From: Dicyema japonicum
Taxonomy: Eukaryota; Animalia; Dicyemida
Reading direction: 5' to 3'
DNA length: 64,000 nucleotides
Assembly: GCA_011109175.1 (NCBI GenBank)
Contig: RDEW01000009.1
Location: 702,875-766,874, forward strand
Below are positions 2,097 to 63,539 of this stretch, in pieces. The translations under genes and the position numbers were made by a program. The notes under the pieces are model-generated. The model had not been told where the DNA came from. It worked only from the letters and a program-made list of their open reading frames with translations, and made no database searches. Each line of letters opens with the position of its first letter. Position 1 is the stretch's first letter.

Positions 2097-2183
2097 TATA
2101 TCTGTTTCACTCACTTTTTCGGAAATGTTTTAATTTGTTCAAAACTTTTTATTAAATTAAAATCTAAAAAGACTCTGAACCGC

Positions 2184-3500
2184 TTGTGTCTACTTGACAT
2201 GTATACGTCATTATTCCTTCTGAAAAACAGTCTCAACGTACAGAAGCTTGCATATGTCATGAGGACTGCTCCCTATTTAGCCCTGTGTGACCAACTCGCA
2301 CAGATTAACGGGATCTTCCGTACGACAACAGAGCATATCTTCAACGTCCGCGTGGCGCCATGTGGTGCTGCGTAGTTAATCGGTTGAAGTTTTCTGCTTG
2401 CTTGTCTCTTCCTCTTCTCTCTTCCTATTAGATGGCGTCATGTGATCCACCTGTCTAGGTGACGCCCAGTGCCAGACCGGCACGAAAAAGGATCATTTGC
2501 TCTCCCCCACTCCATTGTATGGGTTTTCACAACTTCATGTAATGGACGTCTTACTTTTTATGCTGATTCCGGATGGACTCTGTTTCTGTAGAAGTGGAAA
2601 CTGGATACACTTAATTAGTGTTTACTTTAACTTCTTTCTCGGTGTATCCGGGGTTAATAAATAAATAAAATAAATAAACGTCCGGTTCGAGGATTACTCG
2701 TGGAATCAAGCCACGCTGCCTGTGAGACTCGGAGGGCTTGGAATCGCAACTCAGTAGACCATTCTCTCCCTGCATACCCTTGTCAAGAGGATTTTACATT
2801 CCCCGCTGAATTCTCTATTGACAAAAACGCCGGCCATGCTCGTGAGGCTTGGAGCCGTGCTTATCAGCTTTCCCTGCCTTCCTCGTTCTCTCAGCGGTGC
2901 CTGGACAATGCTATATACTGTGTTCCACATACGTGCCGAAGCGGAGACCAGATCGATTGTTTTGGCTTACACCCTCTCTCCTGCGAGAAGAGTGCAGGAA
3001 GATTTCCCAGACACATGGCTTTGAATAAAGTCGTTAGGAAAGCTTTGGACGCCATCGAACACCCCTCCATGCTCGAACGTGTCGATTTTTGCAGGCGGGA
3101 CGGGAAACGACCAGATGGGATGGCAATCTTCCCTTTTGAAGCCGGGAAACCTCTTTTCTGGGACGTCACCTGCACCGACACGTTTGCCTCTTGCAACCTA
3201 CTCCAGGGTGCCTCTGGAGCTTGTTCTGCTGATGAGAGGACCGATAGGTTGAAACTGGCAAAGTACACGGTCCTAATCAATGATTTTTTGTTTGTCCTAC
3301 TTGGTGTTGAGACGTCTGGTTCCCTTGCCCCTGCGACGCTGGAATTCTTGAGTCGTCTAGAGAATCGAATCGTTATACGATCAGGAGACCCTTGTGAGCG
3401 AAGCTTGTTATTTGAGCGAATCTCGCTCGCCATCCTGAGAGGGAATAGCCACGCAATCAGGGCTCCCGCTTTATGACCATTTACTCTCTTTTCTTTACTA
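2184..3500 (+). mobile_element. CRE-clade retrotransposon 3' fragments (RLE domain), interrupted by a LINE 3'-UTR copy
   Basis: ORF 2700-3476 has HPLSCEKSAGRFPRH, DGKRPDG, WDVTC and GVETSG; 2184-2375 has LKNSLNVQKLAYVMRTAP; a small duplicate of the 3' part lies at ~1915-1970. Confidence 0.85.
2390..2678 (+). repeat. Dispersed LINE 3'-UTR repeat ending CCGGGGTT(AAAT)n
   Basis: Homologous to minus-strand copies at ~10310-10560, 48400-48545, 48680-48915, 51560-51700, 51760-52050, 53540-53760 and a partial plus copy at 23100-23280. Confidence 0.8.
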
Positions 3501-10304: not shown

Positions 10305-11070
10305 CTAATTTATTTATTTAATAACCCCGGATATATCGGAAAAGGTATATCCATTTCCCACGGTAGCAGTAAGACACATCTATTTCCAAGTATCAGGTCC
10401 ATCCATGTTCGCCATTGTTGGTAACCTCTCTACTGAAGTAGGAGGTAGATGAATACTTTTGGGCTAGGCACTGGGGTCTCCTGAGACAGATGGATTACAT
10501 GACGCCTCTTGAAGAAGTCACAAATTAGAAAAGAATCCATCGACCAAGTAGATAGTGGTTACCAATTGAACTCAAGTAAAAACGATGACTTCTAAAATTT
10601 CTTACTGAGGGGATTTATGGTAGAATGTTAGTAGAAAAAAAACAAAGAAATTTCGAGCCTAACATTCCCTCCAAACCACCATTCATATTCAAAACAGATA
10701 TGAAGTAATAGAGTCGTTCCGATTCAAATTCCGCTACCGTCAAATTGTGATCAAAGGAGGTTTATGGAAAGCACTTGAAATTTTTTGGATGAGATTCTGA
10801 GGTCTCTGAAGTCCACCGATAGTCCCGGAGAGGAGAAAACTTCTTGTAGAATCAATGATAATTCGTCCGGTGGAGGGAGCCAAAATCCCGATTCGTCTCT
10901 TAGGAGGAGGAAGTGCCCAGAATTTAAGTGTTCTAGGGTCCTCTTTGTTTCTCTGTCGATTGTATTCTCCGAGTCATCCACCAGTGGGGGAGGACCATAA
11001 ATTAGATCGTTCCAAACCAGTCTTCAGATAGTAGAGATGCGGTCACATATTGCCTTTGACTTGGTTTTAT
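10305..11070 (-). mobile_element. APE-LINE (I/Ingi-group) 3' fragment with 3'-UTR and tail
   Basis: Degenerate LIYGPPHWW..RIQS C-terminal motif, then the shared UTR motif and tail CCGGGGTTATTAAATAAATAAA. Confidence 0.65.
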
Positions 11071-20059: not shown

Positions 20060-20922
20060 ATGATTTTTAAATTGGCCACATTTTGAAAAATTTTCTAAGA
20101 AAAAAATCCTATTCTCCTTATTAATTGGCCAATTTTTAATAGCCACAATTTTTAAATTAATTTTTAAAAAAATAAATAAAAATTTAATTAACACATGTCT
20201 TCCAATAGGTCTTGTGGACACTATAGTCGGCTTATTTTTATGAAAAAAACTCAAATTGTTAATTATAAACAAGAAAATGATGGTATTTCGTGCCAGGGGT
20301 TAGTTGATCGATTCTCAGACATGTTTCGAAAGACAACATCGGGAAAAACAATAAATAATCTTTTACTGAAGAAGGACAATATTTCTGGTTTCTGGGTAGT
20401 CAAAAGACGATCAGGAATTGTTTCAAAGTTTTGAATAACTCCAATATTAAAATTCTTGATATTGATATTAATGATACAACAATCTCAAGAACAGACAGTT
20501 TATATCCTCTCAAAGATGAAGATTTTTTAAATATTGAATTCACGGAAAATGAAACATTCGTTAAAACTTAAAATTCTTTAGAAGATTCAGAAAAAAGTCA
20601 ACAGGAATCTAAAAAATAAAACCTGTAGACAAATTGGATATTTCAGTTAGATTAACTGTAATAGAGAGGGAACTCTTAGCCAATGTTGAGAATGAACATG
20701 AAGTTTCTCTAATCTCTTCAATAAGAAAGTAATAGGAAGTATTGAAGGAAAGAAAAAACAGTTAGGAATTACATTTTATTTTAATAAAACTTAAATAATT
20801 TTTTTATTTAAGGCATTTTTAAATTCTTTGGTAATTGTTTTTCGAAATTATTGATTCTATTTTTTCAAATTGGCCACAAAATTCTAAGGAACCAAAAATG
20901 GCCAATTTGCGAGGCTCCAGTG
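20060..20922 (+). mobile_element. pogo/Tigger-like remnant with CENP-B-type HTH
   Basis: KTQIVNYKQENDGISCQGLVDRFSDMFRKTTSGKTINNLL; right end ggccaatttgcgaggctccagtg-TA; internal aattggcc repeats. Confidence 0.6.
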
Positions 20923-22816: not shown

Positions 22817-23689
22817 TTCAATTATATCGTTAATTTCGATTATTATTTCAAGCAGTTGACATTATAGACAATTAATGGCGCAAATGCAGATTTCTTTATT
22901 AATTCAAATTAAATGCTATTTTTGATAACTTTATATTGGATTTTTGGAAATTATTTTTTAATTAAAAATTTCTTAATTAAGTTTTTCTCAAATCTGCAAG
23001 ACTGATTCTGGTTTTGAATCCCCCACCTTGTCGAATATTTCTCTTCCTTTGCTGTGTTCCCTCTATTTTCTATTGGTGGTGAGTAAAAAGGGTAATTTGC
23101 TCTCTTACTCAACTGGGGTTCTCTCAACTGCAAGGATTGGATGTGTTCTTCCCATTCTGTAGATTCTGGATGGACTTATGTGATATTGGAATCAATCTTC
23201 TGCAATGGTGGGAACTGGATACATATAATGGTGGGAACTTCTTTCTCAGTGAATCCGGGAAATTAATAAATTAAGTTTTTGGCTGCAAATATGCTTATTA
23301 AGCTATCCCATCAAATCTTTCGATTTTCAAAGATAACTTATTTATTTTAACAACAAAATTAATTTCAATTCAGGGAGCTTAAATGACCAGGATGTTTTGT
23401 CCGAAAATAGCTATCTCCATGCCCAAATCCTCTGGTGGAGATTACAACTATGAAAAATCTTCCACCAAAGAATGAAGTGAAATCTGCGACGGTAGGACTT
23501 TTGATGAAATGGAAGAGGGCAAACCTACTTCTCCACCTCTCTTCTGAAGTGGAAAGCTGTAATGTACTGTTGGAGGATAGATTGGTCGGCATAAAAAGAT
23601 GTTCTCATTTGGGTTCCTTCCTTGGATTAATTAGTTGTGACTTTGTGATAGGTTTGCCAAAGATTGTAAGCCTTGGATTAAGAAATAAG

Positions 23690-40299: not shown

Positions 40300-43200
40300 G
40301 GCAACGACAGGATAGCATGTTGTCTACATGTGTCGAAAGTGACTCCCATATCTTGACGTTGTGGAGAATTTATTTTATATAGTAAGAGGTTAATTAAAGT
40401 GTTAGTTAGGGGGAGATGGTTAACTACAAGTCCTATCTTACGGTTTAGAGTCTTCCCTAATATCCATCTCCATTTTTACAGATCCTGAAGTCTCATATAC
40501 GAGTCTCTAACGCGACTCTATAAAATTATTCATTTTGTCTTGCATCACCGTTTTCGTCTTGAGCTACTTATTCATCTTTCTTTAACACAGCTTGATAACT
40601 GGTCTTGTCTTTTCTAACCGCAATATTATCTGAGGAATAGTACCACCCATAACATCCGTAAACAGGCGGCAGGACAATGACGCGCTAGAACAGGAACCGG
40701 GAGATCACAGAAACCTCTCTTCCAATTTTCAGCTTTCTCAAGCATACAAGAGCATAGAAGGCTCTTTTCCTTTAACAGCTACGTCTTCCATAAAGTCCCC
40801 CTTCCTTCTGATTAACACTCAAAGATAGTTCAAGTTAGCATATCATTTATGTTCCTCAAGGCGCAGGCCTGTTGATTAAATCTTCGAAAGTTGGAGATTC
40901 CTAGAGCGTTGTTTTTCTCAGCTGTGATGGTCAAACCCTTAAGACACACCATTCGTCGATTTATTCAATGTAATCGCCAAGTCTTCGAGTTCTGTCGGAC
41001 AGGAAGTGTTCATTTATTTTATTATTTCCATTGGGGCTTTTGTTTCATAAAGATGGCTTAGTAGTGCTTCATGCCACACATTATCGGATGCTTTTGATTT
41101 ATCAAGGCAAACAAGATTGATGAGACTTTTGAAATCTCTCGCTTGGTAATTTCGAGTTTAGCAGAGAAAGTAGCTAACGGATCTGCCGGGCAGGAAATCA
41201 TATTGTTGGTTTCCACCGGAAATGGTGTGTCCAAGTTAAATAATAGCATCAAATATGACTCGAATGACCTTCAAAAGAGTCATTAGGTCTTCTTTAAATA
41301 GCCTCATCCTTATGCACTCAATGTCAGGACGTTATTCCGTGATTCTTTTATTCCAAAGTCAACCTCCTGAATTGTAATCTTCGCGTGGTGTGAGTACTGG
41401 GTGTTACTGTCGAGTACTTCCCAACCATCAATCTTATCTGCCTTTTATGCATCAATTTCTTGCGTTCGTTGTAGCTGGTCTCTAAAGATCGCAACAACTT
41501 CTGTTTGGGTTGATTCTTTCCCATCTGACTTTTGAAGTAAAGTCAGGTCCGATTCTGTCCTTAGGCACATCAGTTTTCCGTATATCCTCCAGAAATTTTC
41601 CCTTTTAAGTCTTGCTTCAGATCTCCACTTCTTGATTTCGTCTTTCATCCTGCTCTACAGCGTCGTTTCATCTGATTAATTATTTTTAAGTGTTCTGCGT
41701 GAGGCGGGGGAATTCTCACCCCTCTACCTCTTGTGTTTAACACGACAATCACTTGGTCTTCTCGTGGAGGCCGCTGGTTTCCTACCCACCAGGCAGCTCC
41801 CATAACTCGTTCCGTTGCAGGCCAACCTGCAGTTGATGCATGATCTTCCATTGGTTTTTACCAGCTATTCCGGAAGACTATGCGTCCTCCACATCGAAGA
41901 CAACTTGTCCCATTACAATGCCTTGCGAAGTTGTTGTAGCATCCTCATGGCAGCCTCTCTCTCTATGTCTGTACGTTCAAATGAGAATTCCAGACGTAAC
42001 AGAAAAGTGACTTTCAGTTAGAGTCATCATTAATCTCGCCACTTGTAGTTTCAATCCATTTCTGAGGAACCAGTATATCTTCCTTGGCGATGTGTTGTAG
42101 TAAGTCGTTATCACCCCAGAGATGGTCTCACATTCTGACTTACTATCCGAAGTAAATATCATGAATGTGCTTTATGCCGCAGACACCGTAATGGAATTAA
42201 TAGCGAGCGAATCATGCACCCCTGTTGAGGTGTGATTGTACAGCGGCAGCCGCGAGAAATGGGGATCTTCCCTAACGGCTAAAATAATATCATCTGCATA
42301 AGCTAGGATCAGTATGTTTGGATCATTGACGTTTGAAATATCGGATAAAAGCAAGTTGAATTATGCAGGGGACAGTGGAGATCCGGTAACAGGAGAGATA
42401 TTGAATTATGGTTACCAAACCGTACTCTCCCACGTCGCCTGAAAAAGAAATTTATCAGCCACAGTTTTAGAGTCGAATGCTTTTTGAGTGCCCACATAGA
42501 GCAATGCTGTTCGCAAATAGGTTTTTGGTGTATTGAGAGCATCGGTGATAAATTGAGAGACAAATACAAGATCCATTGTAGTTGAGCGACTTGGTCTGAA
42601 ACCACGTTGGAAGGAAGGTGGCAAAAGATTCGGGAAAATTATCTTTAGAACAAGTTTTTCCAACACTTTGAACATTGTGGATGTAAGGGAGACGGACCTG
42701 TTTTCAGAATATGTTTGATCAAGGAATTCTAGATATTTGGGAGAACTTGTGTGTTGATAGATTAATTTTAAAAATCCGTTAATGCAGCATTAAATCGAGT
42801 CAATGATCCTTAAGGTGGATCAATGATACCCCATCGGGGTCACATGCAAGGGTTGCACGTAGTGAAGCAATGGAATCACTACAAATAGGTCTTTTGAGTC
42901 TCATCACAATCGGGTTATGGGTTACATTCGGTTACGTTCGACTCCGGATATTTTCCAAGTTGGACCTAGTACCCACACCAATTGATTTCTACATTCGAAT
43001 TGGGATCTACACGGGATGTTGTTAACCACATCATCGGTCCCTGCAGGACGGTTTGGGACCACCGTGGAATAACATACTTGGGAAAAGACCTACAAAGGGA
43101 GAACTATCTGGAGATGGGCGTACTGGCTTTGTACGTTCTGGAGATAAATTAGTAATTGGATGGATAGCAAGGATAAGGGGTACCCGGAGGAACAGTCCAG

Positions 43201-43560
43201 GCCAACCGGAGGACTGGTAGTTACCTATTCTATAACTTGTTGTTTTAATTCATTTTTCATTTTCGGGTTATGGTCGCTTGAAAAACCACACCGTACATCC
43301 CATGAAATACATCATGCAAGTGAGGGAGTACACAATGAGATGCCTGAGGAGGAAGGACTGTCCAGTCTTCGGATTGGAGTCCTGGTATGAAAATTCAGAT
43401 TATTTAGAAAAACCATATGGTCTATAGTCGACAATATAATCTTTCTCTCACCGTCAGTTTGTTGAGATTGTAACCACTGGGGTGTTAGCGTTCAAATCGC
43501 CACAAATAATAAGGTCTTTCAACCCACAAAGTCCCGATAGCTTTGTTCCTGATGTTGCCG
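40300..43560 (-). mobile_element. Degenerate APE-LINE (I/Ingi-group)
   Basis: IICGDLNA (EN), KVLEKL, FQRGFRPSRST, ILAYADDI (RT). Confidence 0.75.
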
Positions 43561-43619
43561 GACGGGGATTGGGCGTTACCTGAGTAAGGTGGATCAAATT
43601 ACGCACCAAAAGAAAGACT

Positions 43620-46360
43620 CCTGGTATGTCTGGATGGTATGCCTCAACTGGAAACTCGAGATGTTGTTTGTTCCCCTGGATTCTATTGCTTTCTGGAGAT
43701 ATTGAACAAAACCCTGGACCAAAATTCCTTGTTATTATGCAACTCAATGCTAACGGAATAAAAACAAAGATTCTGGAGTTACGATGTCTATTATCGAAGC
43801 ACAAGATTGACATGTGCCTTATCCAGGAGTCAAAACTTTCTACAAAGAGTACAACCCCACTTTTCCTGGATACATCTCTATCAGAAAAAACCGCATTTGA
43901 AGTGGTGGTGGCTTACTTACCATTATTAAAAACGGTTTATCCTTCCACGATGTGAGCTCGCAAGTGGATGATTTAATTCTATACGACAGGACCGCAGGAA
44001 CAAATCTCTATTGATCTTATTAATGGGTCAGAGCATCTTATTCTAATCAACATTTACATTCCCCCGCCGGGTGTCCTAATAACTATGTTCCGAAGCTCAA
44101 CAAACTAAAAGAAATTTGAAATGTGTTAATATGTGGAGATTTAACGCTAAACATCCCCAATGGTTAAGAACCTAGTCGGCGGACAAGAGGGAGAGTCTAA
44201 TTATTAAATTTTTCGTGATTCTGAATCACCCGAACATCTTCACAAGGACACCAGTCTGAAGAAATAACAACCCAATCTCCCCCAACATATCCTTTGCTTC
44301 CTCTAAGATTGCCCTGATGATTTCATGGAACGTCTCTACGGTTTTCATAGTGGTCATAATCCGATTATATTAAAACTGAGCCGATTCAATAACTCACGTA
44401 GAATTAAAGCAACCTTAAAGATCTACAAAAAAGCTGACTGGTCAAATTTCAAGCTCTTCATTGCACAACCTAATACATTTTGCTTCATCGACAAAGTTGT
44501 TTGTCCCACGTGCAGTGTACAAATCCTAAAAGACTACTCTGGACACGGAGACTCGTCTCCTCATCAAGCAAATAAACTGCCTGAAGATGAATCATCAACA
44601 AACCTCTTCTGATTTGGAAAATATAAAATGTTTAAATCAGAGAATAACAAAACTCATCAGAGAAAAGAAAGATAGGGCGTGAACCGCATATGAATTATGC
44701 AAGGGAATCATATATTGGACATATAAAATCCACGATGTATCAGAATCCTTTTCTGCTCCAAATACTGAACAAGCTAACAACCTAATGAAATATTACGCAT
44801 CTATAAGTCACAAAGACTTCTCGAAAACTCATTCTTGTCACATTCGGAATTTAGTGCCTAAACCAACTTTGTGGATCAATTTATTTACGCATGCCGAGGT
44901 CACACAGGCTATAAGATCGATGGAGAGATCTTATTCGTGTGGTCCTGACGATTCCGGGAATTTTGCTAAAACACCTTGGTAATGTTGCAATCAATTCGAT
45001 TACGTCAATTTTTAATTTGTCCTTTAACAAGAACGTCATCCCATGCAAATGGAAGAACTCACTTATAATACCCCTCTAAAACTAGGAAAACCGAAAACGT
45101 TGCCTTCTTTCTACCGTCAAATTTCATTGACGTGCGCATTATCGCGTCCAATGGAGAAACTCGTACTCTGGAAAATTAAACCCCATTTGCCCAACTGCCA
45201 CTTTCAACATGGTTTCAAATGTGAGCGTTCAACTAGGACACATTTGACTTCACTGTCTAAATTTATATCAGAAGGGTTTAACGACCGAAATGCCATTTAC
45301 GGTGAATATGGTTCCTGGATATCCAGAAGGCGTTCGATTCTGTCCAGAGAACATTACTCACGAAAAGGTTTTTGACACCACCATTCAGCGGCTTTGAAAA
45401 GATGGATAGCAAATTTTCTCCGGAAGAAGAGGACGTGTTGTGTAGGCCATGCAAAATCGAGGTCCCGTCTTACCAAATGGCGTCCCTCAAGGATCGCCCT
45501 TCTCCGGCGCTATTCAATTTATTCCTAAACGATTTACCTGCCCTGGAGACCAGATTCAATGCTTCTTACATATGCTGACGACTTAATTATCGCTAGTAGG
45601 AGCAAATACGTGGATATGACAAAATCAGAGCTTCAGTCACATATTGATGACCTGGGAGCCTGGTTAAATTTGAATCGTCTCTCTATATCCAGGGATAAAT
45701 CAACTTATACTATCTTCACCACAGACAGAAAAATATATACTGGATTTGAGCATATATGGAGAATCTTTACTTTTACAGATTCATCCAACTATTCTGGGAG
45801 TGGCTTTCGACCCTTTGATGAAATTTTCTCAACATGTGAAGAACGTTATGACAAAGGGTCTTAGGAAACTGAAAATAATGAAATCGTTTTTAAAGTCCAG
45901 GCCGTCATGGGAATGCGCTGTCGTCTTGTACAATCAACTTTTAAACGACGGTTGAGTATGCTTGTGCCTCATGGGCTTATGGAGTTTCAATATCCAATTT
46001 GTACAAGATCAATTCCCTAACAGCCAAATTGGTGCGTCTAACGAATCTACCTGCCGATCTTTTCCCTCCAATGCTTGACCACGCCTCAATCGAAAACAAC
46101 GGTTCCGGTTTCATCGGTCTGTGTAGTCACGAAACAAGTCGTTTCTTCCATTCAAGACTAGAAGTCTCAAATAAGCGTAAATTGGGAAAAAACCACCCCT
46201 TTTCAAAATCTAATGAAAGGTGATCGTCGTCGGTACAGGAAAGCCGTGGGTACTCTGGAGGAACATAAGAAAAACCTCTCGATCCTTTTGAGGTGTACCG
46301 AGGTCACTTAATTAGTTGTTTTACTCCTTTCTTGATGTTGCCTTTTCGGGGTTAAATAAT
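43620..46360 (+). mobile_element. Near full-length degenerate Ingi/L1Tc/Vingi-like element with N-terminal 2A peptide
   Basis: LLLSGDIEQNPGP + IMQLNANG..IQESKL (EN), FQHGFK..RST, GVPQGS, YADD; tail tttcggggttaaataat; its last ~320 bp recur at 59190-59510. Confidence 0.85.
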
Positions 46361-46421
46361 AACCTAAATGTAAGAAAAAACCCAAAAGAGAAACAAGAAA
46401 ATCAATTGTAATTAATTAACA

Positions 46422-46942: not shown

Positions 46943-47633
46943 CCGTAGTTATGATTGCTTATTAATGATATTTAATTTATTCAGACATTTAGTTAATAAA
47001 GCTTCCAGGAATTTAAAAGCGTGAACCTTTTGCAGAACGTGCGGGATTTTGCAGATTTCAATGTCGATCAATAACTGACTGTTCATTGCATAAGCTAGGA
47101 ATCTGATTGTGCTTTTTAATTGCTTATGAACTTAAGAAAGAAAGGAAAAAGTGATACAATTGACCAGTTGTGCAGGTCATTGTCGATTTGAGAAAGTCAT
47201 GTTTTTTCCATTAGAATTTAATAAAATGTCTCCTGTGAACAACAGAAGTGGATTGATGACATTCTAAGGGTTTATTAAAACCGTAGCTTACTTATATATT
47301 CGCTTAACAACAATGAGTTTAACTCCCCCTCTGGCTACTTTATCGAAGGTATCTCTTAATATTTCACTGCTCCTGATGTTTTATCATGAAATCACGTGGT
47401 TGATCTATCTCCAAGAAGACCACTTAATTCTCCCACTACATTGATTATCCTTTAGAATTCACAACTTCTGTCAGCTAGTCGTTTCTCCCCCTTTTCAGGA
47501 TGTACTCATTATCATCTAAGAAGGAGTCATTGTCGGTGATTTAGGAACTGAATACACTAATTGAGAATGTTTAAAAACAAATCCCCTCTTAATTACGAGA
47601 AAACAATCACGTCCTTGAATCTCGTTTAACTAG

Positions 47634-47738: not shown

Positions 47739-48399
47739 CTGTTAGAATTGGAGAGCTAAAAGGAAACACATAATCACAGAGTAGAAAAGAACTAAGAACA
47801 GCAAAAAGACAAAATTAAAAAACTAGCTAAGTCATTGGTTCAAGGAGAATCAAGTTGAGAATATTACTTCCTTTGACGACTATCGTCTTCCCGCAAAACT
47901 CCTCTTCGTTGATGGAGTCACAATCCATCACAATATTAAGGTAAGGGTCATAACCGCGGAACACTCCCTTTATAACCGTATTGGAGACTAATTTAACTAA
48001 AAGGCGCTTTTCTAAATATCTAAATTATAAATAAATCCACTATTTTTGATACTTTCGTAACTCCGGAAAATTCACACGAGCCATTTAACACAGCGTTGCT
48101 TTTAAATTTATTTAATAAATTTTATTTATTAGTATTAATAAATAAAACTTTAATTTCAAAAATTTCCATGCTATTTAAATAAAAATGAAATAATTCATTA
48201 TCCTCGTCTTAACTACCCCCTCCAAGATATTTCTCTTCTCAAAGGAATTTTCTTTGGATTGTATTCCCTGTTTTCTTTGGGGGATTTATGGGAGCGCCCG
48301 GAAACGCCTATGAATCTTTCTTCTCATTTAAAAAAACTTTAAAAAGGCCACATCAGTCTAATAAAATGGCTATATCCAGTTCCCATGGTCAGAGTGAAA

Positions 48400-48915
48400 C
48401 GCATCCTTTCCAACAATCACTTCCATCAGTATCCACCATTATGGGAACCCCTTCACTAGAATAAGGAAGAGATGAATCCTTTTTGGATGCCGGCTATACT
48501 TTGACGTCTCCTGAAACAAGTGGATCAACTGACACCTCTTAGAATTTGAACCATACGCAGAGCAAAACAGAATCCTTCAACCAGATAGGTATCGATGTGG
48601 GAATCGAACCCACAGATATTTGCGATTCGAGAAACATCAATTCGTTAATGTTTAGGCTTAATTTACGAATTCTAGATGCGCCGACCGAGAAGTAAACATA
48701 GTGAACTATTTAAATTTATCCAGTATCCACGGTCGCGGAAACAGAGTCCTTCCAACATCACATACAAGTTCATCCAGAACCAACAGAAAGAGAAGAACAC
48801 ATAGTTCTTAGTCTTTGAGAACCTCTCCAATATATTGGGGAGAGCAAATAGTTTTTTATGCCATCTCGTCACTGGACGTCACATGAGACAAGTAGATCAC
48901 GTGACGCCACTCTAG
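48400..48915 (-). repeat. Two LINE 3'-UTR copies
   Basis: ggtgtcagttgatccacttgtttcaggagacgtc and ggcgtcacgtgatctacttgtctcatgtgacgtcc. Confidence 0.7.
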
Positions 48916-51559
48916 TTGAACGATTAATATAGTAAGACATCTAACCACTAAGCTACCTGGTCACGAGGTTTTTCAATTTAATAAGTCGGTGGAATCAATA
49001 TTTTGAATACATTTGACGGACCATCACAAAAAAAGTCCTAAATTTTTTGCTCCAGGTTGGATTCTATCCAAAAATTGAATATCGATAATATACACTCTCG
49101 AAGCCATCCAGTCTCACGTGGATCTTGGTGGCCCTTTAGATCATTGAGCCGATCTTGCAGATTAGATCTTCCGCTTGTGGGGCAAAGATTCTTGACGCCT
49201 CAACAGAAAATAAGACAAACAAGTGATCCTCCGAGATGCTTATATACTTCATTCTCTTCTGATCCTCGGCTTCTTCTATTCTAATACTGGTATTTTGCTT
49301 TTAAATTAAACTGAGAACCATAATATCGCTACGAGCTGCCTACCATTAAGAAACGCATCACCACGTCGAGTAGCTCAGAGACCATCCACTTTCACGTCAT
49401 AGTGGTTCATGGTAACATAAAGAACTTAAACTTATCTTTCACTAATGATATTCACAATCTAAATGAACGAGTCCCACTCTGATGGTCATCGGGAGCATCG
49501 ATTCTGAAGCGATAACCTTAAAGGTCTGTGTCCATATTTTTTTAAAATCTATAGAGCCTTTTATTTATAAAATTCAATTGTTCTGCCAACTCGCGAGGTT
49601 TCGAAGGTGAACTAGAGGAAAAGTATTAAAGTCACAGTATTTATTCAATTTCCTCTGTTCTGCATAGTCACCAACTGGACGCCATCTAGACAGTCGCTGA
49701 CGAAGGAAAACGATTTGAAGAGGAATCGACGAATGTGACGCCTGTGATTAGTAGGATAGCATACAAATTAAAAGAACTAAGTCCATATTTAACAGATATC
49801 GAAAAAACTGTTTTCTATGCCTTATTTCCAAGGCCCTTGGAAAGTACAAGAGCTCATTCTCCTCAACATTGGATGCTATATTTACCAAGTACCCTGAACT
49901 AACCATCACCTACGGTTGTGCCAAGTGGGGTATAAATATAGCAAAGATCCACATAAACAAAATCAAGGACTTTCATCTTCAGTAATTAGAACTCTCAAAA
50001 AGTCACCCATTGGATATCATACACTCTTAGTCGGGAGAACATATGCACGATTCATCTTCGTGGACTCCTGCCAGCAGTACGAGTTCACAGGAGGTCCAGG
50101 ATCTTGTTAGAAAAGATGATGTGGTTACGAGAGATAAACTTGGCAAATTCAATAGTCGTGTTTTTTATTTTTAATTTAATGATGATCCTTGGTCTTCAAT
50201 AAATAAATAGATCTTGGATACACTGAGACAAAAACTAACACAGTATGCCCCTAATAAAACCCAAATCACTTCCTCTGAGATACTCTCCTTGGCGACGCGC
50301 GCTTTCATTTTCACTCCATTGGACACTTTCTGTTTTTGGAGCAGTTTAAAATTTTTGTCGGATAAGAAAATAAAATTTAACCGGCAAATGGTACGTTAAA
50401 AAGAAAAACTATCTGATGTCCTTATGAATGAGAAGCCTTCAAAACCAGATATTCGGAAAGGGGCATCATCCTAAATAAAAAAGAACTCATTGTGATGGGA
50501 TTTAGGGCACAATCGTTTGTGGAAAAACCTCCTCAAAAATTTTTGTCTGGATTTTTCTATGGTATTCGACGTTATTGAAAAGTTAAAAGACGATAGGATC
50601 TCTGTTTCTCTATTTCTCATGAAGATTATTGCAAAGAAAATTTAAGCTACCGTAGATTACAATAATTTTAAAGGCGTCTGACGGATGCTTGTGTGGTTTC
50701 AAAAACGATACAAACTCTTTCAAAGCAATTTCTTGGGAAATCAATTCTGATTTTATTCGGCGAATACAACCACCATTTGGATAAATTCTAGATATCCTCG
50801 GTTGTGACAAAACTAAGAAAACATTAACAAGTCAATAAAATATATCCCAATCTTTTAAATAATTTCAGAAGCTAGGAGTCGTGTTGTAACTAGGACTACA
50901 GTAGTGCTGAAGAAAGATGGAAGATCAAAGATCTGTAATTCTGAAATTATTCTAGAGAATGAATCCGAATTAATTGATGGACACAATATTGATTGAACTG
51001 AAAATAAGTGGATTTAAAACAACGTTGTGGAATGGTGAGGGAAAGGGGTTAGTTCCATTGATTTGACAAAAATGATGAATCATGTTTAACATTAGCTATT
51101 AAAGACAACTAAATCTTAAGACTAACGATCTCTTATTTATTGGGAAAAAGTACAATATAAGTGACTATTTTTTTGCAGAAACCAGAGAGAACTAAAATAA
51201 GTATAGGGGACTTGTTGAAGATATACCCCTCGCGATTGCTGTCGAGAAAACCGGAGCGATAAGCAGTAAGCCCTTATCTTCATCAAGAAACTTGAACGTG
51301 TTGTCTCGTTCAGAAGCCATGATGACCGCGAAATTCGATGGATCATCCAATTGGTTTCCATGGAAATCCTGAGTGCTGACGTCACATCGATGAAGTTGGC
51401 AGGAATTAAATTAAATTATTCCAATGACCGAGGTAAGAAGGTTAAAACCAAACTAACTAATTCCTTGATCCTAACGTGTTCCAGCAGAACCTTCACCCAG
51501 CACAATGATCCAAAGGACGTTGTCCGATGAGCTGAGGTAGATTCAGAACTCGTTGCCAC

Positions 51560-52050
51560 GGAGCGAAATTGTCACCCGATCGAATGAATAGATGGATCCT
51601 TTTGAACGCCGGCCAGGCATTGGCTGTCTCGTGAATAAGGTGGATCAAATGATGCCATCAGAGGGAACGAAGAGAAATCCTAAATAAGTAGCCACATAAC
51701 ACCATACGGCAGCAACCTTCTATTTCTAAAACGGATTGATTTCCTTTTCTTTAAGGCATTTTCTATTGTGGTGGGTACACAGTAGTTAACGGGTAATTAA
51801 ATTTATTCAGTGCGGTCATATAAGCAGATAGAACTTTCAATATTAAACACAAGTACATCAAAAGCCAGAGAAAGGAAACGTCCAATCCTTGCAGTTGTCC
51901 AAACCCTCCGATAGTGCGGGAGTAACAAACGATCCAGGAACTGGGAATAACATGAGACAGGTAGATCACTTGACGCCACTCTTTCAGAACAAGAAGAGAA
52001 GGGACAAAGAAAACGAAAAGAAATCTTCGACCGACAGCCAATGGGGGAAA
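51560..52050 (-). repeat. Two LINE 3'-UTR copies
   Basis: ggcatcatttgatccacc..aaaaggatc and ggcgtcaagtgatctacctgtctc. Confidence 0.7.
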
Positions 52051-52138
52051 TCGAACAAAAAGAGTATTGACACGATAATTTTAGATATCAATTATTTTCC
52101 TAAAATTCCCGCTGGAAAGAACTTTATTGATTAAAAAA

Positions 52139-52638: not shown

Positions 52639-53539
52639 TAATTAATTTATTTAAATAAATTAATTTTTAAAGAATAAATGAATAATTTATTTAAGAGAAA
52701 TAAAATTCTAATTGATGACTAGGAGCTGCGTAGAAAGGGGAGAACTGAACTACGATTTGATGGAGTAAGAAAAGGAATGGTTCTTTTTCGTTCTCATTGA
52801 CACTGGGCGGTGGCACATTAGGAGAACCACTCTCATATTGGAGTCGTCAATACTACGGAATGACTGCAGATTCTTTCGAATCTTAAAAGAACCAGGAAAT
52901 CAACTATGTTTGACTTGGTTACTATTGAAAAATGGTCGATTTTTTCTTAGAGATCTGTCTCCCAATGATTTCCTGTATAGGATAAGATTTCAGGAAACAG
53001 TGGGGTATTTTGATAGGCACAAATGAAAATGCCAAAAATGATAAGGGGAATCGGAATCTCCTAATCATTTCAGATACTATAACCATCTTTCTTGGTGTTT
53101 CATGGGATTGTGTAAATAAAAGACTTGAATGTACTCAGACTGTTGAGAGTTAGTTTAATGTTCTGGAACATTATTATGTCATTCTGCACTCTCTCTTCGT
53201 AAACTAGCAAAATCTTAGATTGTTCAGAAAACTCAATTATGCTAGGGTCAACATCTTCAGACGTCTCATCAGATTTCGGCTAAAAATCTGCCCTTCAACA
53301 TCTGTTAGTTCTTTAAGGTTTTGGTGATAGAAACGGTTCCTGTGCATGCATATCCATATTTTTTATTTTACTACAAAAAAAGTTAATAACAAACAACTAA
53401 TTAAGTGATACAGACAAAAAAGATAAATTCAGATTATTGTAATCCTTAACCCTGATCATATTTTAATGACTTACTTCAATTTAATGTTTAACTTATCAAA
53501 AACAATGGATACACCGATAAGTTCACGCACAAAACTATC

Positions 53540-53760
53540 TAGGATCGGAGAAAAAAATAAGAAAAAGTCCAGTCTTGCAGTTGTGGGGACCCCTCCAATG
53601 GAATGAGGGAAAGTAAATGATCTTTTCTCTGACTATCATATTATTGGGCGCCACTTCGAAAGGTGGATCACATCACGTCATTCGACCAGGAAACCAGTAA
53701 GGGAAATCGAGTCCAGGATCAATTGCTATAGAAAGACATCCTAACTACTAAACTACATAC
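53540..53760 (-). repeat. LINE 3'-UTR copy
   Basis: gtgatccacc..gtggcgccca..agatcatt..caactgcaagactgga. Confidence 0.6.
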
Positions 53761-53999
53761 TTTCTTGATATTTATTTAATTAATAAAATAAATAACCTGG
53801 TTCCTTAGAGTAATTAAAGGTCTTTTTGCGTTTATTATTGTTATGAGCAACAACAAAGAATATAACTATAATTCTATTCATGGATTTCTTCGGCTTTTTT
53901 TTACTAAGACCAAAGAAAATTATTTGTTTTCATTTAAAATACTAAAATATTATTTTAGTTTTAAATTCTTTATTATCAAATTATTTAAATTTGATAATA

Positions 54000-56700
54000 A
54001 TAATTGCTTTCTGTGATGGAATCTGATACTGTCGAGAATGATCTCTTAATAGTTTCAACTAGCATTCATCTTAGATATCCTATCCCAATCAAATACCCGA
54101 AATGCTTGAACTGCTTGTCCAGACTATATTGTTTCATCGTTCCTATGGAAAGGTAGTCAAACCACTAATTGTAGTTAATATACAAAACCGACAGCGAGTA
54201 CACGATCGACGCTTTGGGGTACCAGGATGTGTTTTGTGACACATTTGACTACTCTTACGTAAAAGTTACCTCACCACAGCTGACTGACACCGTGCGAAAG
54301 TGTATATCTGAGGCGGTCTCAATGGTCGACGTGAATAACTCGCCTTCTTTAAAGGTGGTCGAATATGTTACCCCAAGTTTCAATTGTACTTCTACCGTAA
54401 GTTATCCGGGTGGTTTGCCAGTGGTAGCACAAATTGGGAGAAGTGGAACATCAAAGTAAACGTTTTGGACCCAAAATCAAAACCTGTGGATTGTCAGAAT
54501 GATGGACCGTCCGGTTTTCTATTATTTTAACGGTAGATGATGAATTACGGGAATATCTCGAGTATTGCGTCTTTTCCATAATCTCGAAGATTCGACTACA
54601 GAAGACTCCTCCGATTCCTAGGAGATTGGATGTCTCCTCTGTGTTCAGCATGGACTATAATGATGTGCAGCCTTACCACTTTAACTTCACTTGTGAAATC
54701 TAATTTTTTTACTTCTTTCATTATAATGATTCTTTGGGCTCTAAAATAGTCTTCCACGTGCTACCTTTTAGATAATAAAGATATGATTTCTTTGGCTGTG
54801 TCTGCTACTATTCTCTGATGAATTTACTTTATAGGAGCGATGCTGAAATCGATAACTTACTGGAACAAGAGAAGAAGTCGTCCTCTATAAGATGGCACAG
54901 TGAAGAAACCGGTTATGTTAATATTGTCTTGTAGAGCTGAATGGTGACCATAAGCTACAAGAAAGTCTGTGGTGATAAAAGAGTCAAATTGTTTAATTAA
55001 ATTGTTTGTTGTATTTTTAATAACCCTGAATATACCCGAAATAGGTTTTATCCAATTCTCTCTGTCGGAGTGGGACGTTTTATTTCCCAGCATCAAGTCC
55101 TATCCAAATATCTACCTTTATAATAATCCCTCCAATGAAGGGAGGGTTTCTTTTTTTGATTGAGGGTCTCCTGGGTTTGGTGCTTCGATGACACTGTTCA
55201 TTATATTGTTTCGAATTTCTTTAATTGTGTAAACTAAAAATAAAATAGTAAAAAATTCATGATTGGCTCAATGATCTACGTGGGACTGAATGGCTTCCAG
55301 AGCGTATCTCGATTGCTAGAGGAAACAGCCTGTCGATTCAAGTTCCTTAATTTAATTATTTGTGAATAAATGGATTTAATTCATGATTATAGCTGAAATT
55401 AATTTATTTAAGGAACACACATTTCATGATGACTTTCATTAGCAAAATATCAGTATTCTGAATATTTAAAAATTTTTAAAATAAATAATTTACATAGTGG
55501 AAAATCTTACCGAAAGTCTGTCGGATCTTGAAAAAAGTACCTGAGATGAAGATAATACTCAAGAGACAGTGGCTCGATGTTCCTTTTTTGATCCTATACA
55601 AGGTCTTTTCAGGAGTATGACAGGAATCCCTGCTATATATGAATGTTTTAGCTTATTTTGACTCATAATTTCCTTCACTTCCTTTTCAGTGAAGTAAGGT
55701 AACAATAGATACCTTTTCGATTTTTTTAAGGACAGGTAGGAGTGTCAGTCACTCTATAGTCTGTGCCCGAAATTGTGCAAGGCATTTAGGTCCTTTTGGT
55801 TGCAGTTTTCGTCTTAAAGTGGCCATTCATCTGGCTTTGAAATGTTGCAAATTTCTTTCCAGACTTCGGATGTCGACTGATTGTGATTTAAGGCCGTAAG
55901 AATCCGTGTACATTTTTTCTTTATTTTGAATTCCTTGGCTTTTATTTCAGTGTTAAACGATCTTAAACGGAGCCATGCATCGAGTAAAATTCACCCCGCC
56001 TTTTTGAGACGATTTCTTTCTTCGGTAAAGCCATTCTTCCAGGGACACTGGTATAACTAGTATGTCCTTTTGAGAGATACATATTCTTGCTTACAGAATG
56101 ACATTGTTGATGTAGGTGACCCATTTGTCAATAAAGGTGAAGCTCTCCAGATGTAGCTCAGTCGAACCAATGTTCTTAAATTACCTGAAGAGTCACCAGT
56201 TTGCAAATTTGTAGATATAGCGGATTCATCTTTTCGGGAAGATCCCTCTCATAATCCTCCAAAAATAGAATTATAGTCCTTTCTAATGTCATAGACGACT
56301 GGCCAATTTATTCTTGTAGAAAGAGGGAAGCAGAATGTGATGTTTGACAAGTATGTTGATCTGAGATAGATCCTGTGTTCTCGTGACCACAGTAAATTTC
56401 TTCTAATATCAACGGACTGACTTGACAGCAAAGGAGATGCTTGGCGTCCAGATCTCCATAGATCAATACGTCATCAAACTCATCAGGACTGATAGGTCCA
56501 CCATTGAGTACTTTTTCTGGCATGAACCAGGAGGAGGTACATCAATATTCACTAAAAACAATTTTAACTATGTAGTTCCAACAGATATCTCGATGCTCTC
56601 AGTTATTTTGTCATTGCCCTGGAGTTTCTTCACTTCTGGTGGATTATCCTTGTATCTGAGTCATCCACCACGTTTTTTAGTAAGATCGGTTAAATTCAGG
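54000..56700 (-). CDS. One or more orphan multi-exon genes, unresolved
   Basis: Several minus ORFs (54451-54651, 54857-55096, 56308-56523) with candidate micro-introns; no domain recognised. Confidence 0.3.
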
Positions 56701-56784: not shown

Positions 56785-56940
56785 TCACGTGGCTCACCGA
56801 CGACGTGGTGGCACTTGGAAGAAACGAGCTAAACTTTCTCTATCCTTATGGGAAGGCCTATGCCGTTGTGGAGATGTTGAGGCAAACCCAGGACCAGCCT
56901 GACTAGTTCAAAATAGATGGAACCAAAATAAGGAATTATT
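56785..56940 (+). mobile_element. Ingi/L1Tc-like 5' end: HDV-like relic + 2A peptide + endonuclease start
   Basis: CACGTGGC-TC-ACC-GACGACGT-GGT-GGCACTTGG..GCTAA, then CGDVEANPGP at 56867-56896. Confidence 0.75.
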
Positions 56941-59189: not shown

Positions 59190-59510
59190 TTCAATTGATT
59201 CCCCCCAATGCTTGACCACGCCTCAATTGAAAACAACGGCTCTGGTTACATCGGTCTGTGTGGTCATGAAACAAGTCGTTTTTTTCCATTCAAGACTAGA
59301 AGCCTCAAATACGGGTAAATTGAAAAAAACCCACCCCTCTTCAAAATCTAATGAAAGGTGATTGTCGTCGGTACAGGAAAGCCGCGGGTACTCTGGAGGA
59401 ACATGAGAAAAACCTCTCGATCCTTTTGAGGTGTACCGGGGTCACTTAATTAGTTGGTTTACTCCTTCTTTCTTGGTGTTTCCTTCTCGGGGTTATTAAA
59501 TAAATAAATT
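59190..59510 (+). mobile_element. 3' end copy of the 43620-46360 element
   Basis: High identity to 46065-46360, with tail ctcggggttattaaataaataaa. Confidence 0.9.
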
Positions 59511-59539
59511 AAAGTAATGAAAAAGAGTCGCAAATTTCA

Positions 59540-60849: not shown

Positions 60850-62393
60850 ATATAGAGGATGACCTAGGAGCTATGTCTATATGTTCCATGTGATTGCTTT
60901 CAGACAATGGAAACGATAAGTAGTAGGTTTGTCTTAAAAACTTTGGAAAAAAATGAATATCACATCAATTATATTTTTATTTACCCCCAGCCTCTTCAAG
61001 TGTAGAAAACCGATGTCTAGGAAAAACGTAACTAACAATGACGGACGTTTTCAGATATTCAAAGGGTAGATCCCGTGCAGGTGAAAAACAGAAGGCAGAC
61101 GAGGACACGAGAAAAGGTGATCTGTCTCGTGGTTATCTAGTGTAGATGAAGACCAAAGTGGCAACTTTTCCTACTCGGTCTTGTATAAGTAGCGGAGGCG
61201 CGCCAAATTTACCTCAATTTTACGAGGAAAAGAAGATTCACAAACATCGATGCCCGGAGGAGGGCGACCCATTAACTTGTTTAATCCAAGGTTTCGGATC
61301 GTATTTGTTGACAACTAGTGTATATTTTAGAAGTATCCTTGTTTTCCGGAAAAGATTTGAGGACGCGTCAATTATATTGACGGGAATAAACAATTAGAAC
61401 ATAAAAAATGTGGTAATAAAAATTGATAAATTAAACTAGTAGTAATCAGATTAAAACACTTCCTTGTTTCACATATGTAAATACTTAGGTTTCATCTGCG
61501 TCGTACTCTTGCATAATAATTTTTTTCAAGTAGAATTGAAACAATGAGAGTCCGGTAAAGACATTACTAGAGAAGTGTTAAATGTTCAACTAATAAAATG
61601 ATAATTGAACAATATTAAAACTGAATTCCAAAAATATTAAAATAACTAATTAAAGTCTGTAATTTGATGTCAATGCTAGTGGTCATTATTGCGAATAAAT
61701 GCAGTACTTAATAATTAAATGATTTTATTTTTACGGAAAACACAATTAATTCAAAATTACTAATCGCTTCTAAATTTTTCTCCTCTTAGAATAGGAGTCG
61801 CTGACCTGAAACCATCCGTTTCCACCTCACCAGTTTACCTGGAACAATAATTGAACTGATTTGCAAATTCCACAAGGTTGCTGTAACCAAATCTGCCTCG
61901 ATAGTGCGCACTCGTATTTATACTCGACCAACATGTCCTCTAACGTTTTCAGAAAACAATTGATTGAATGTTATAGTTGGTGCATCGATTACGATGACTT
62001 TAAGTGACATTCATAAGCCTTCGAAATGACAACGTCCCATGTTATAATAATATGTATGGCTTAGAATGGAGCATCATAAAGTAGCTTAAGCTCTCCAGCC
62101 AATAAATCGTATTTATGCAACTTTTCTACTACTGGTTATTTGAGCGAATATCCTAGGAGAGAATAGCCACGCAGTCAGGGCAGCCTCTATATAACCGTTA
62201 CTCTAGTTTCTTCAAAAAAATTTAACTTTTCTACTTAAGTGTGCTTTAATTTTTTTGTGTGCTTTAATAATCCTTAAGAAGTAATTTCAAGAAGTACAAT
62301 TTTATTCTTCTCCTCATCGTGGAAAAAATATCAAATGATTTATATTAACTAGTATTACCAGTCTTAACAAATAATATAGTAAAAGAAAATTAT

Positions 62394-62466
62394 CGACCAC
62401 GCTGGGACTCGAACCCAGAATCTCCCGATCCGTAGTCGGGTGCGTTATCCATTGCGCCACGCGGCC
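62394..62466 (-). tRNA. tRNA-Arg(ACG)
   Basis: GGCCGCGTGGCGCAATGGATAACGCACCCGACTACGGATCGGGAGATTCTGGGTTCGAGTCCCAGCGTGGTCG, 73 nt, full cloverleaf, followed by a T-run. Confidence 0.97.
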
Positions 62467-63539
62467 GACAATTGTCTAATTTATACTTAATAGCACAGTA
62501 ATTATTTATCGGCTAACTAAGCTTAAACTCATATTTGAAATGTCATCGATCACGTGGTTTATCCTTAGGAATTACATCATAAAACAAATGCAAGTTACGT
62601 TAGTAAATTAGAAGGGCCACCAATGTTTTTCTTCATCAGAAGCTTTTTATCCTTATCAAAATTACCCAAATCTTAAATGATTTGACCAGCAAAATTATCT
62701 ACGGTCCAGCATTTTTCTATTTAATGGCCGATCCCAAATTTGAAAATTCGTAGAGAGCTAATCTTCGATTAGACTTGTCATAATGAAATAAACAAAGTCG
62801 AAATTGAATACCATATTTTTAATGGCACAATTTCTTTCATGTGAGCTGGAAATAAAGTGATGTTGCCACGATTAATCATCGACGTGACTAGAGACCAATT
62901 ATCATTGAGTAATTGCGCTCCTTCGCGGATATGAAGACACAGATAAGATTGCGAATTTTTTTAGAGCCCTGACTCAATTTTTGTAGAAGATCTAAACTAA
63001 AAAAAAGTTAGCTTCGGCTGCGGGACAACCAATCAAGGTAGACATCTGTTGAAGACTCTCTGATAGTATGGGATTTAAAGTGCTATCATAGCCAACACTA
63101 CCCTCCATTTAGTGGAGACAACTATGAGTTTTTTCTAGTTTCCCCAAGCTGTTCTGACACTTTTGAATCACCCAGTCTTTCTACGGGATATAAGAAGTTA
63201 GAATGAATTTCTCTTAACGAAATAATGATCTTAAAAAGCTAATAAGAGAGCTGAAAACCATTGACGACCTGAACTCTGAGATCGCTAACAACAAAAAAAC
63301 ATGGAAAAGATCGATATTCAAAAATCTGTCTTCTACTGCGAATGCGGATCTACATGAAAGTGCTTATTGTTTATTTTTGCTGGATTGGATTTAGATCAAA
63401 GTTTTTAGCTGCCAATAAAATATTTGACTTGAAAGGAAAATTCATATAAGATATCTAAGCAGAAGAAAAGAGGACCTTCAGAACCCTCATCTCCTCTCGC
63501 CTGTTACGTCTTAAGAAAAGGACGTTTTTTATTTTCATG

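Follow-up and report, generated by a model that had tools for sequence, protein, structure and literature searches.

What kind of element carries the pseudoknot-like RNA fold that can be drawn at positions 2434–2496 of a 64,000-nucleotide stretch of Dicyema japonicum DNA (contig RDEW01000009.1, positions 702,875 to 766,874 of the forward strand; hereafter the window), and what might the fold do there? An earlier note on this DNA had described it as a nested pseudoknot in the strand order of the hepatitis delta virus (HDV) ribozyme, placed it in the 3' untranslated region (UTR) of a long interspersed element (LINE), and proposed either a self-cleaving variant or a non-catalytic pseudoknot used for recognition by reverse transcriptase (RT), for stability or for termination. 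Our analysis indicated that the fold is the central domain of a short interspersed element (SINE) with a tRNA-like head. On balance, we lean toward regarding the module as the conserved, structured and non-cleaving central domain of a tRNA-headed SINE superfamily, mobilised by a LINE of the 2A-endonuclease-RT type.

The 63-nt module (2434–2496, +), drawn as a nested double pseudoknot, was defined by the pairings read in the sequence together with a descriptor match. P1 pairs GGCGTC with GACGCC (2434–2439/2461–2466, 6 bp), P2 pairs GTGATCC with GGATCAT (2442–2448/2490–2496, including one G.U pair), P3 pairs ACC with GGT (2449–2451/2458–2460) around a TGTCTA loop, and P4 pairs GTGCC with GGCAC (2469–2473/2479–2483), after which GAAAAA leads up to P2. 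Every helix was thus found as first written, and a descriptor for the order P1-P2-P3-P3'-P1'-P4-P4'-P2' matches 2434–2496, in agreement with the proposed HDV strand order. The caveats raised at the same time, a P1 of 6 bp, a missing G in the loop L3 and a long junction J4/2, are also true of this copy.

Profile analysis placed the fold in an essentially full-length SINE copy of ~326 bp at 2351–2676 (+), which aligns with positions 12–336 of the SINE profile (E value of 9e-74). The copy lies within a target-site duplication of 6–8 bp, in which AACGTCCG at 2343–2350 (+) recurs as the same 8-mer at 2677–2684 (+), at least CGTCCG being duplicated. Excision of 2351–2676 restores the reading frame of a host LINE (..IFNVR FEDYSWNQATLPVRLGGLGI) in the C-terminal part of its second open reading frame (ORF2), and the downstream flank resembles LINE proteins at 45–50% identity. 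Since the insert is flanked by a duplication and its removal restores the host frame, the ORF remnants beside the fold belong to a different, interrupted LINE. The ORF2 of this host (2160–3476, +) is 45–50% identical to proteins annotated in Octopus sinensis, with 258 codons still open beyond the insertion.

The insert begins with a tRNA-Arg-like head (2351–2395, +), which contains an A-box-like motif (TGGCGCCATGTGG) and a B-box-like motif (GGTTGAAG). This head aligns with the 5' half of the tRNA-Arg(ACG) gene of the window (62393–62467, −), nearly base for base over the first ~20 nt of the insert, and the motif at the B-box position (GGTTGAAG or GGTCGAAG) is retained across the SINE copies. 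The first ~25 nt of the tRNA gene are nearly identical to the 5' ends of the SINE heads at 2346–2372 and 46943–46915, and the gene is a candidate source of one head type. A second type of tRNA-like head is represented by TAGCTTAGTGGTTAG and CTCGATTTCC, with TAGCTTAGTGGTTAG carried by the copies at 48.9 and 53.7 kb. ARAGORN and Rfam gave no call on the decayed SINE heads. Behind the head, a pyrimidine-rich linker (2396–2433, +) differs between families, with a pairwise identity of 0.33–0.5 as against 0.63–0.76 in the 5' half of the module. The 3' tail (2600–2676, +), which ends in CCGGGGTTA(ATAA/AAAT)n, is common to the SINE and its partner LINE, being similar to 59434–59513 and to the LINE end at 46290–46368. 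The GGGGTT(AATA/AAAT)n tail starts at 2650, ~155 nt beyond the fold.

Comparison of the copies revealed that seven of them share a 5' end at profile positions 4–13 amid unrelated A/T-rich flanks, so the element is a discrete unit of ~330 bp and not a set of random LINE truncations. It displays the characters of a tRNA-derived SINE, namely a tRNA-like head bearing A and B boxes, a 3' end in common with a LINE, a short and non-coding body, target-site duplications and a common 5' end, and the fold forms its central domain.

Further copies of the module were sought with an nhmmer profile built from the window's own copies. Eight modules were detected in the window, at 2431–2504 (+), 48912–48840 (−), 51658–51587 (−), 48539–48468 (−), 10509–10445 (−), 53682–53609 (−), 51981–51932 (−) and 43607–43550 (−; E value of 5e-8), and the best match after these had an E value of 0.5. 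All eight reside in SINEs. The search recovered all six additional copies that had been listed before and added the one at 43607–43550, but none of them keeps the four helices: the seven other modules are decayed, some without P4 or the 3' strand of P2, and 0/7 match the HDV-order descriptor. The corresponding SINE copies, delimited by profile search and alignment on the minus strand, lie at 10309–10583 (module 10509–10445, with the 3' strand of P4 deleted), 48329–48623 (module 48539–48468, inserted immediately after the tail of the copy listed next), 48656–48970 (module 48912–48840, with a different tRNA-like head, GTAGCTTAGTGGTTAG), 51404–51727 (module 51658–51587, in which the first pair of P4 is A-U and J4/2 is UCAAAA), 51743–52069 (module 51981–51932, with P4 deleted and the 3' strand of P2, P2', retained) and 53431–53775 (module 53682–53609, a full-length copy with an A- and B-box-like head). 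The module at 43550–43607 (−) belongs to a SINE copy whose linker is split by a nested LINE.

Analysis of this nested element identified the probable partner of the SINE. The LINE at 43619–46394 (+) begins 7 nt ahead of its ATG (43626) and encodes a canonical 2A peptide (SGDIEQNPGP, 43692–43721) fused directly to an apurinic/apyrimidinic (AP) endonuclease (APE), followed by an RT; as judged from profile searches and translation, it is compact, has no ORF1, carries the SINE-type 3' tail and contains no module, and several stops interrupt its ORF. At 59199–59513 (+) lies a 3' fragment of this LINE family, 89% identical to 46062–46379, with the SINE-type tail at its end. The last ~70 nt of the SINE recur at the 3' ends of both elements, and the likeness is limited to this tail. 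On the strength of this shared end, the LINE at 43619–46394 is the likely mobiliser of the SINE. A profile search of the LINE 3' regions 45700–46394 and 59199–59513 detected no module. The setting of the fold is therefore not a LINE 3' UTR, as had been assumed, and a self-cleaving variant belonging to such a 3' UTR has no place here, the fold being at the centre of a SINE. Because the 3' UTR of the partner LINE lacks the module, recognition of a LINE 3' UTR by RT cannot be its role as proposed. As for the LINE ORF remnants noted at 10.3–11.1 kb, a weak C-terminal remnant does exist, but the SINE with its own head lies ~290 nt downstream of it.

The abundance and consensus of the family were assessed with four runs (X1–X4) of Logan contigs from one sample of the organism, each of 138–187 million letters, mapped to the sequence at a likeness of at least 80%. 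These runs contain ~80% of the sampled words from a 5.8-kb non-coding stretch, which suggests either that the genome is small or that the assembly was made from this very sample. About 15,600 contigs of the largest run (X3) fall on the SINE 2351–2676, with the contig depth highest at the module and the tail block. Comparison of the family majority with the 2434–2496 copy revealed a single difference within the module, A2476G, which affects a base in the loop of P4; L3 in the abundant family is UGUCUA, identical to this copy. The abundant family consensus therefore possesses all four helices. The two commonest helix variants, A2462G (36% of depth, giving a U.G pair) and C2483U (16–21% of depth, giving a G.U pair), are both compatible with wobble pairing, while G2484A, G2490A and C2478U each account for 5–7% of depth.

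Among the window copies, pairwise identity is 0.63–0.76 in 2436–2474 and 0.33–0.52 in the head, the linker and most of the downstream body, apart from two short blocks at 0.60–0.65. With the high identity confined to 2436–2474, it is the P1/P3 hairpin and its internal loop that are clearly under selection. The module is common to SINE families with two different tRNA-like heads within the window. Alignment of the eight copies also revealed a few compensatory changes in P2 and P4: one family has G.U as the first pair of P2, where three other copies have U-A, the third pair of P2 is G-C, G.U or A-U, and the first pair of P4 is G-C or A-U. In total, five pairs are changed on both sides, and the 3' strand of P2 survives in one copy that lacks P4. 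Covariation support for the fold is nonetheless weak, as the scores given below indicate.

Outside the window, no module was found at two 22-kb loci (44 kb in total, two genomes) from Octopus sinensis and from an assembly in ENA; these loci have almost no repeats in common with the window. A profile search with the decayed RT piece gave weak matches only, and searching the literature by sequence motif yielded nothing but human primer and Alu-like strings.

HDV-order descriptors were applied to both strands of the window, a loose one (P1 of at least 6 bp, P2 of at least 6 bp, P3 of 3 bp and P4 of at least 4 bp) and a strict one (P2 of 7 bp and P4 of 5 bp). The module at 2434–2496 was the sole loose match on either strand; the strict descriptor matched it together with a spurious A/T-only site at 20089–20191 (−), leaving the module as the only match in the window that contains G+C. 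The A/T-only site is a chance match in low-complexity DNA. The nested topology also persists in the reverse complement of the fold, in which P1 and P2 exchange places and P4 falls within J1/2, so helix order alone identifies neither strand nor family. Both points bear on ribozyme hunting in general: with loose descriptors, chance alone produces the delta-type order of helices about once per 64 kb, and the reverse complement keeps that order.

Comparison of the module with HDV-like ribozymes revealed agreement in the helix order, the U at −1, the G at +1, the 3-bp P3 and the A-rich J4/2. The differences concern the catalytic core. In HDV-like ribozymes, P1 has 7 bp and starts with a G.U pair, whereas P1 of the module has 6 bp and starts with G2434-C2466; variants at 2466 all stay below 5% of depth. 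The ribozymes carry two C and a G in L3, neither of which is present in the module. P1.1 fails in the canonical register (U.C, G.A), and a register shifted by one offers U2452-A2468 and G2453-C2467. An unpaired C opens J4/2 in the ribozymes, whereas J4/2 of the module is GAAAAA and C2483 pairs with G2469; a C is nevertheless found in J4/2 of sister copies, those at 51.6, 48.5 and 10.5 kb (with the J4/2 sequences UCAAAA, CCAAAAA and CAAAA among them). The Rfam covariance models of the HDV family gave no match to the module, but the same models also miss the LINE folds L003, L004 and L005 described next, so this negative has little power. Judged by these features, the module is most likely a relative of hepatitis-delta-type ribozymes that is non-cutting or at best weakly cutting.

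According to the passages of PMC5786205 and PMC4035085 that cite Eickbush & Eickbush 2010, Ruminski et al. 2011 and Sanchez-Luque et al. 2011, HDV-like ribozymes are known in R2, RTE and L1Tc/ingi. Those ribozymes stand at the 5' end of the element, while the module lies 80–100 nt inside a SINE transcribed by RNA polymerase III (Pol III), although both are found within retroelement RNA. Folds of HDV order were also found in the 5' UTRs of three of three related 2A-PHD-APE-RT LINEs from other organisms (L003 90–169, L004 163–229 and L005 147–215), 30–95 nt upstream of the ORF. L3 of L004 (UCUUCGC) and of L005 (UCCUCGC) is of the textbook type, and both folds have a C at the start of J4/2; L003 has the ACC..GGU P3 in common with the SINE module, and its canonical P1.1 pairs are present. 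With delta-type folds at the front of these LINEs, a LINE 5' origin becomes plausible for the SINE module, which by this analogy may descend from a 5' ribozyme.

Several observations weigh against the pseudoknot and against its descent from a LINE 5' end. Block-shuffled windows contain on average 1.84 loose and 0.375 strict matches, and shuffling of the downstream 40 nt produces a 7-bp P2 partner in 4.3% of cases; because of these frequencies, the helix parse alone is not above chance. The minimum-energy nested fold is no better than that of shuffled sequences (z = −1.6), and the P4/P2' half has a pairwise identity of 0.53, near background. In the alignment of the eight decayed copies, pairing holds in 74% of cells as against 70.5% in shuffles (reached by 11/500), and the covariation score is 0.179 as against 0.147 (reached by 33/500); both figures are inflated because the structure was derived from one of the eight rows. 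In families whose L3 is UGUCUCA, P3 can be extended to CACCUG/CAGGUG (5–6 bp) with a 3-nt loop, an arrangement in competition with P2 that would eliminate L3. Finally, the module never occurs in a LINE within the window. A simpler account would hold that no pseudoknot of consequence exists and that the SINE conserves an imperfect hairpin of ~40 nt (2434–2466), or a DNA-level or other SINE signal, P2 and P4 being fortuitous. The restriction of clear conservation to 2436–2474, the frequent chance matches to the full descriptor with a chance expectation of 4% for P2, the covariation below significance and the copies that miss P4 or P2' would all suit this account, which we consider doubtful yet worth serious attention. 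It fits less well with the presence of P1 to P4 in the consensus of the abundant family, with a GAUCC/GGAUC core of P2 on both strands in most copies that retain the region, including one without P4, and with the double changes in P2 and P4 and the wobble-compatible nature of the commonest helix variants.

At the opposite end, the module could be an active, possibly slow HDV-like ribozyme whose cut in the SINE transcript, 5' of G2434, would free the head from a body with a 5'-OH. The correct helix order and the U at −1 and G at +1 would allow it; C2483-GAA would mimic C75-G76-A77-A78 of HDV if G2469-C2483 opens, two pairs of P1.1 are possible in the shifted register, sister copies have an unpaired C in J4/2, and better folds of the same kind occur in related LINEs. 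We nevertheless regard such activity as improbable. None of the window SINE copies (0/10) begins at the predicted cut site, all keeping linker or head; the first pair of P1 is G-C and not G.U, P1 has only 6 bp, the two C and the G are missing from L3, and C2483 is paired and is replaced by U in 16–21% of the family depth. A cut between the Pol III promoter head and the body would, moreover, produce promoterless daughters, as Kojima 2018 (PMC5786205) pointed out for a ribozyme cutting behind a Pol III head. A bolder proposal, to which we likewise give little credence, takes the module either as a slow working HDV-type ribozyme in mid-SINE, with the balance of cut and uncut RNA regulating amplification, or as a protein-binding handle that mimics both LINE ends. 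If true, removal of the head would yield a body with a 5'-OH and tune how strongly a repeat that ranks among the most abundant in this genome is amplified. The least credible explanation is a LINE 3'-UTR structure used by the LINE RT for template recognition, stability or termination. The position of the fold ~155–215 nt upstream of a LINE-type tail and the weak LINE C-terminal remnant at 10.9–11.0 kb upstream of one copy could speak for it, but the tail-sharing LINE has no module in its 3' UTR and resembles the SINE in the last ~70 nt only, the copies carry tRNA-like heads and a common 5' end, and the ORF that flanks 2434 is a host LINE split by the insertion. Within the window, this explanation is already contradicted.

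We therefore return to the non-cleaving central domain, in which the non-catalytic pseudoknot of the earlier note is favoured, with its setting moved from a LINE 3' UTR to the centre of a SINE. According to this model, the SINEs would be copied by the compact 2A-endonuclease-RT LINE with which they have the last ~70 nt in common. In the Pol III transcript, the domain would form a long imperfect hairpin consisting of P1 plus P3, and the internal-loop strand GUGAUCC of this hairpin may pair with GGAUCAU beyond the small G+C hairpin P4, which would result in the helix order of a hepatitis-delta-type ribozyme. The catalytic core is presumably degenerate in this SINE family, and the copied RNAs would not be cut at the 5' edge of the module. 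The knot may instead serve the SINE as a structure, either as a handle for the LINE protein or as a stabiliser of the transcript, by analogy with bipartite LINE derivatives that keep the 5' RNA structure of their LINE. If this is true, SINEs may borrow the 5' RNA structure of LINEs besides the 3' tail, which is a testable idea.

The ~60-nt block described here outconserves the head and tail and is common to different tRNA heads, as are the central domains of the CORE, V, Deu, Ceph, Meta and Nin-DC superfamilies; the likeness is one of description, and sharing of the module was seen within one genome. To our knowledge, no function has been agreed on for the conserved middle domains of SINE superfamilies, and we know of no defined fold that is generally accepted for them. 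In stringent LINEs, 3'-UTR stem-loops and pseudoknots are recognised by the RT, as in eel UnaL2 and the R2 3' UTR. These are likewise structured RNAs of LINE-dependent retroposition, but they belong to the stretch that LINE and SINE have in common, whereas the module is located outside the common ~70 nt and is missing from the LINE 3' UTR. Closer in arrangement are the bipartite elements. Kojima 2018 (PMC5786205) reported SINE bodies that stem from the 5' parts of RTE and Vingi LINEs, including SINE2-1_AMi and SINE2-1_ACar with Vingi 5' ends and the Ceph-domain from an RTE 5' UTR, and bipartite non-autonomous elements are also represented by the R2 SIDEs (PMC3414825) and NARTc/RIME (PMC4035085). 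The bipartite SINEs have the same order as the SINE described here, with a tRNA head, a conserved middle block and the 3' tail of a partner LINE, and the partner LINE 43619–46394 resembles ingi/Vingi-type elements in its 2A-APE-RT organisation without ORF1. Their middle block comes from a LINE, however, whereas the module was found in no LINE of the window, and the expectation of Kojima 2018 (PMC5786205) that ribozymes are excluded from SINE bodies differs from the ribozyme-shaped fold kept here.

The split copy at 43.6 kb was resolved by the sequences around the nested LINE. A 13-bp duplication (43606–43618/46382–46394, 11/13 identical) flanks the LINE 43619–46394; upon excision of the LINE, the SINE profile alignment runs on into the linker, and a SINE head fragment was detected by profile search at 46943–46882. 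Because the duplication flanks the LINE and linker and head pieces of the SINE lie beyond it, this copy is a SINE split by the nested insertion of the plus-strand 2A LINE. The same duplication and SINE pieces led us to reject the module as an antisense 5' leader of that LINE. Two other assignments were also discarded. The region 43607–43550 is not a LINE 5' end, as ..CGDLNANTP represents the GDxNA motif of AP endonuclease and not a 2A peptide, and an APE-coding origin of the module (YIPP region) found no support, the APE profile aligning only from ~43535. The remainder of the split SINE was not found downstream of the 43550–43607 module; its 3' side is abutted by a 5'-truncated and frameshifted LINE at 43535–42133 (−), which comprises the endonuclease from the GDLNA motif on and an RT at 42699–42139. 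An isolated second 2A fragment (..CGDVEANPGP) occurs at 56786–56900 (+), with neither a following endonuclease nor an in-frame ATG, and no recognisable fold lies upstream of it.

Two further SINE pieces complete the inventory of the window. The copy at 55013–55173 (−) is 5'-truncated and begins within the module (profile position 121). The variant at 23085–23273 (+) consists of a B-box-like head, a linker and the tail, with the module replaced by ~11 nt, and represents an internal-deletion family without the fold. Two pairs of SINEs are arranged head to tail (48970 into 48623 and 52069 into 51727), the second member beginning immediately after the (TAAA)n tail of the other, and other SINE copies likewise have TAAA-like upstream flanks. 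Because SINEs sit behind such tails and have TAAA-like flanks elsewhere, the arrangement suggests that the endonuclease of the partner LINE prefers TAAA-like repeats.

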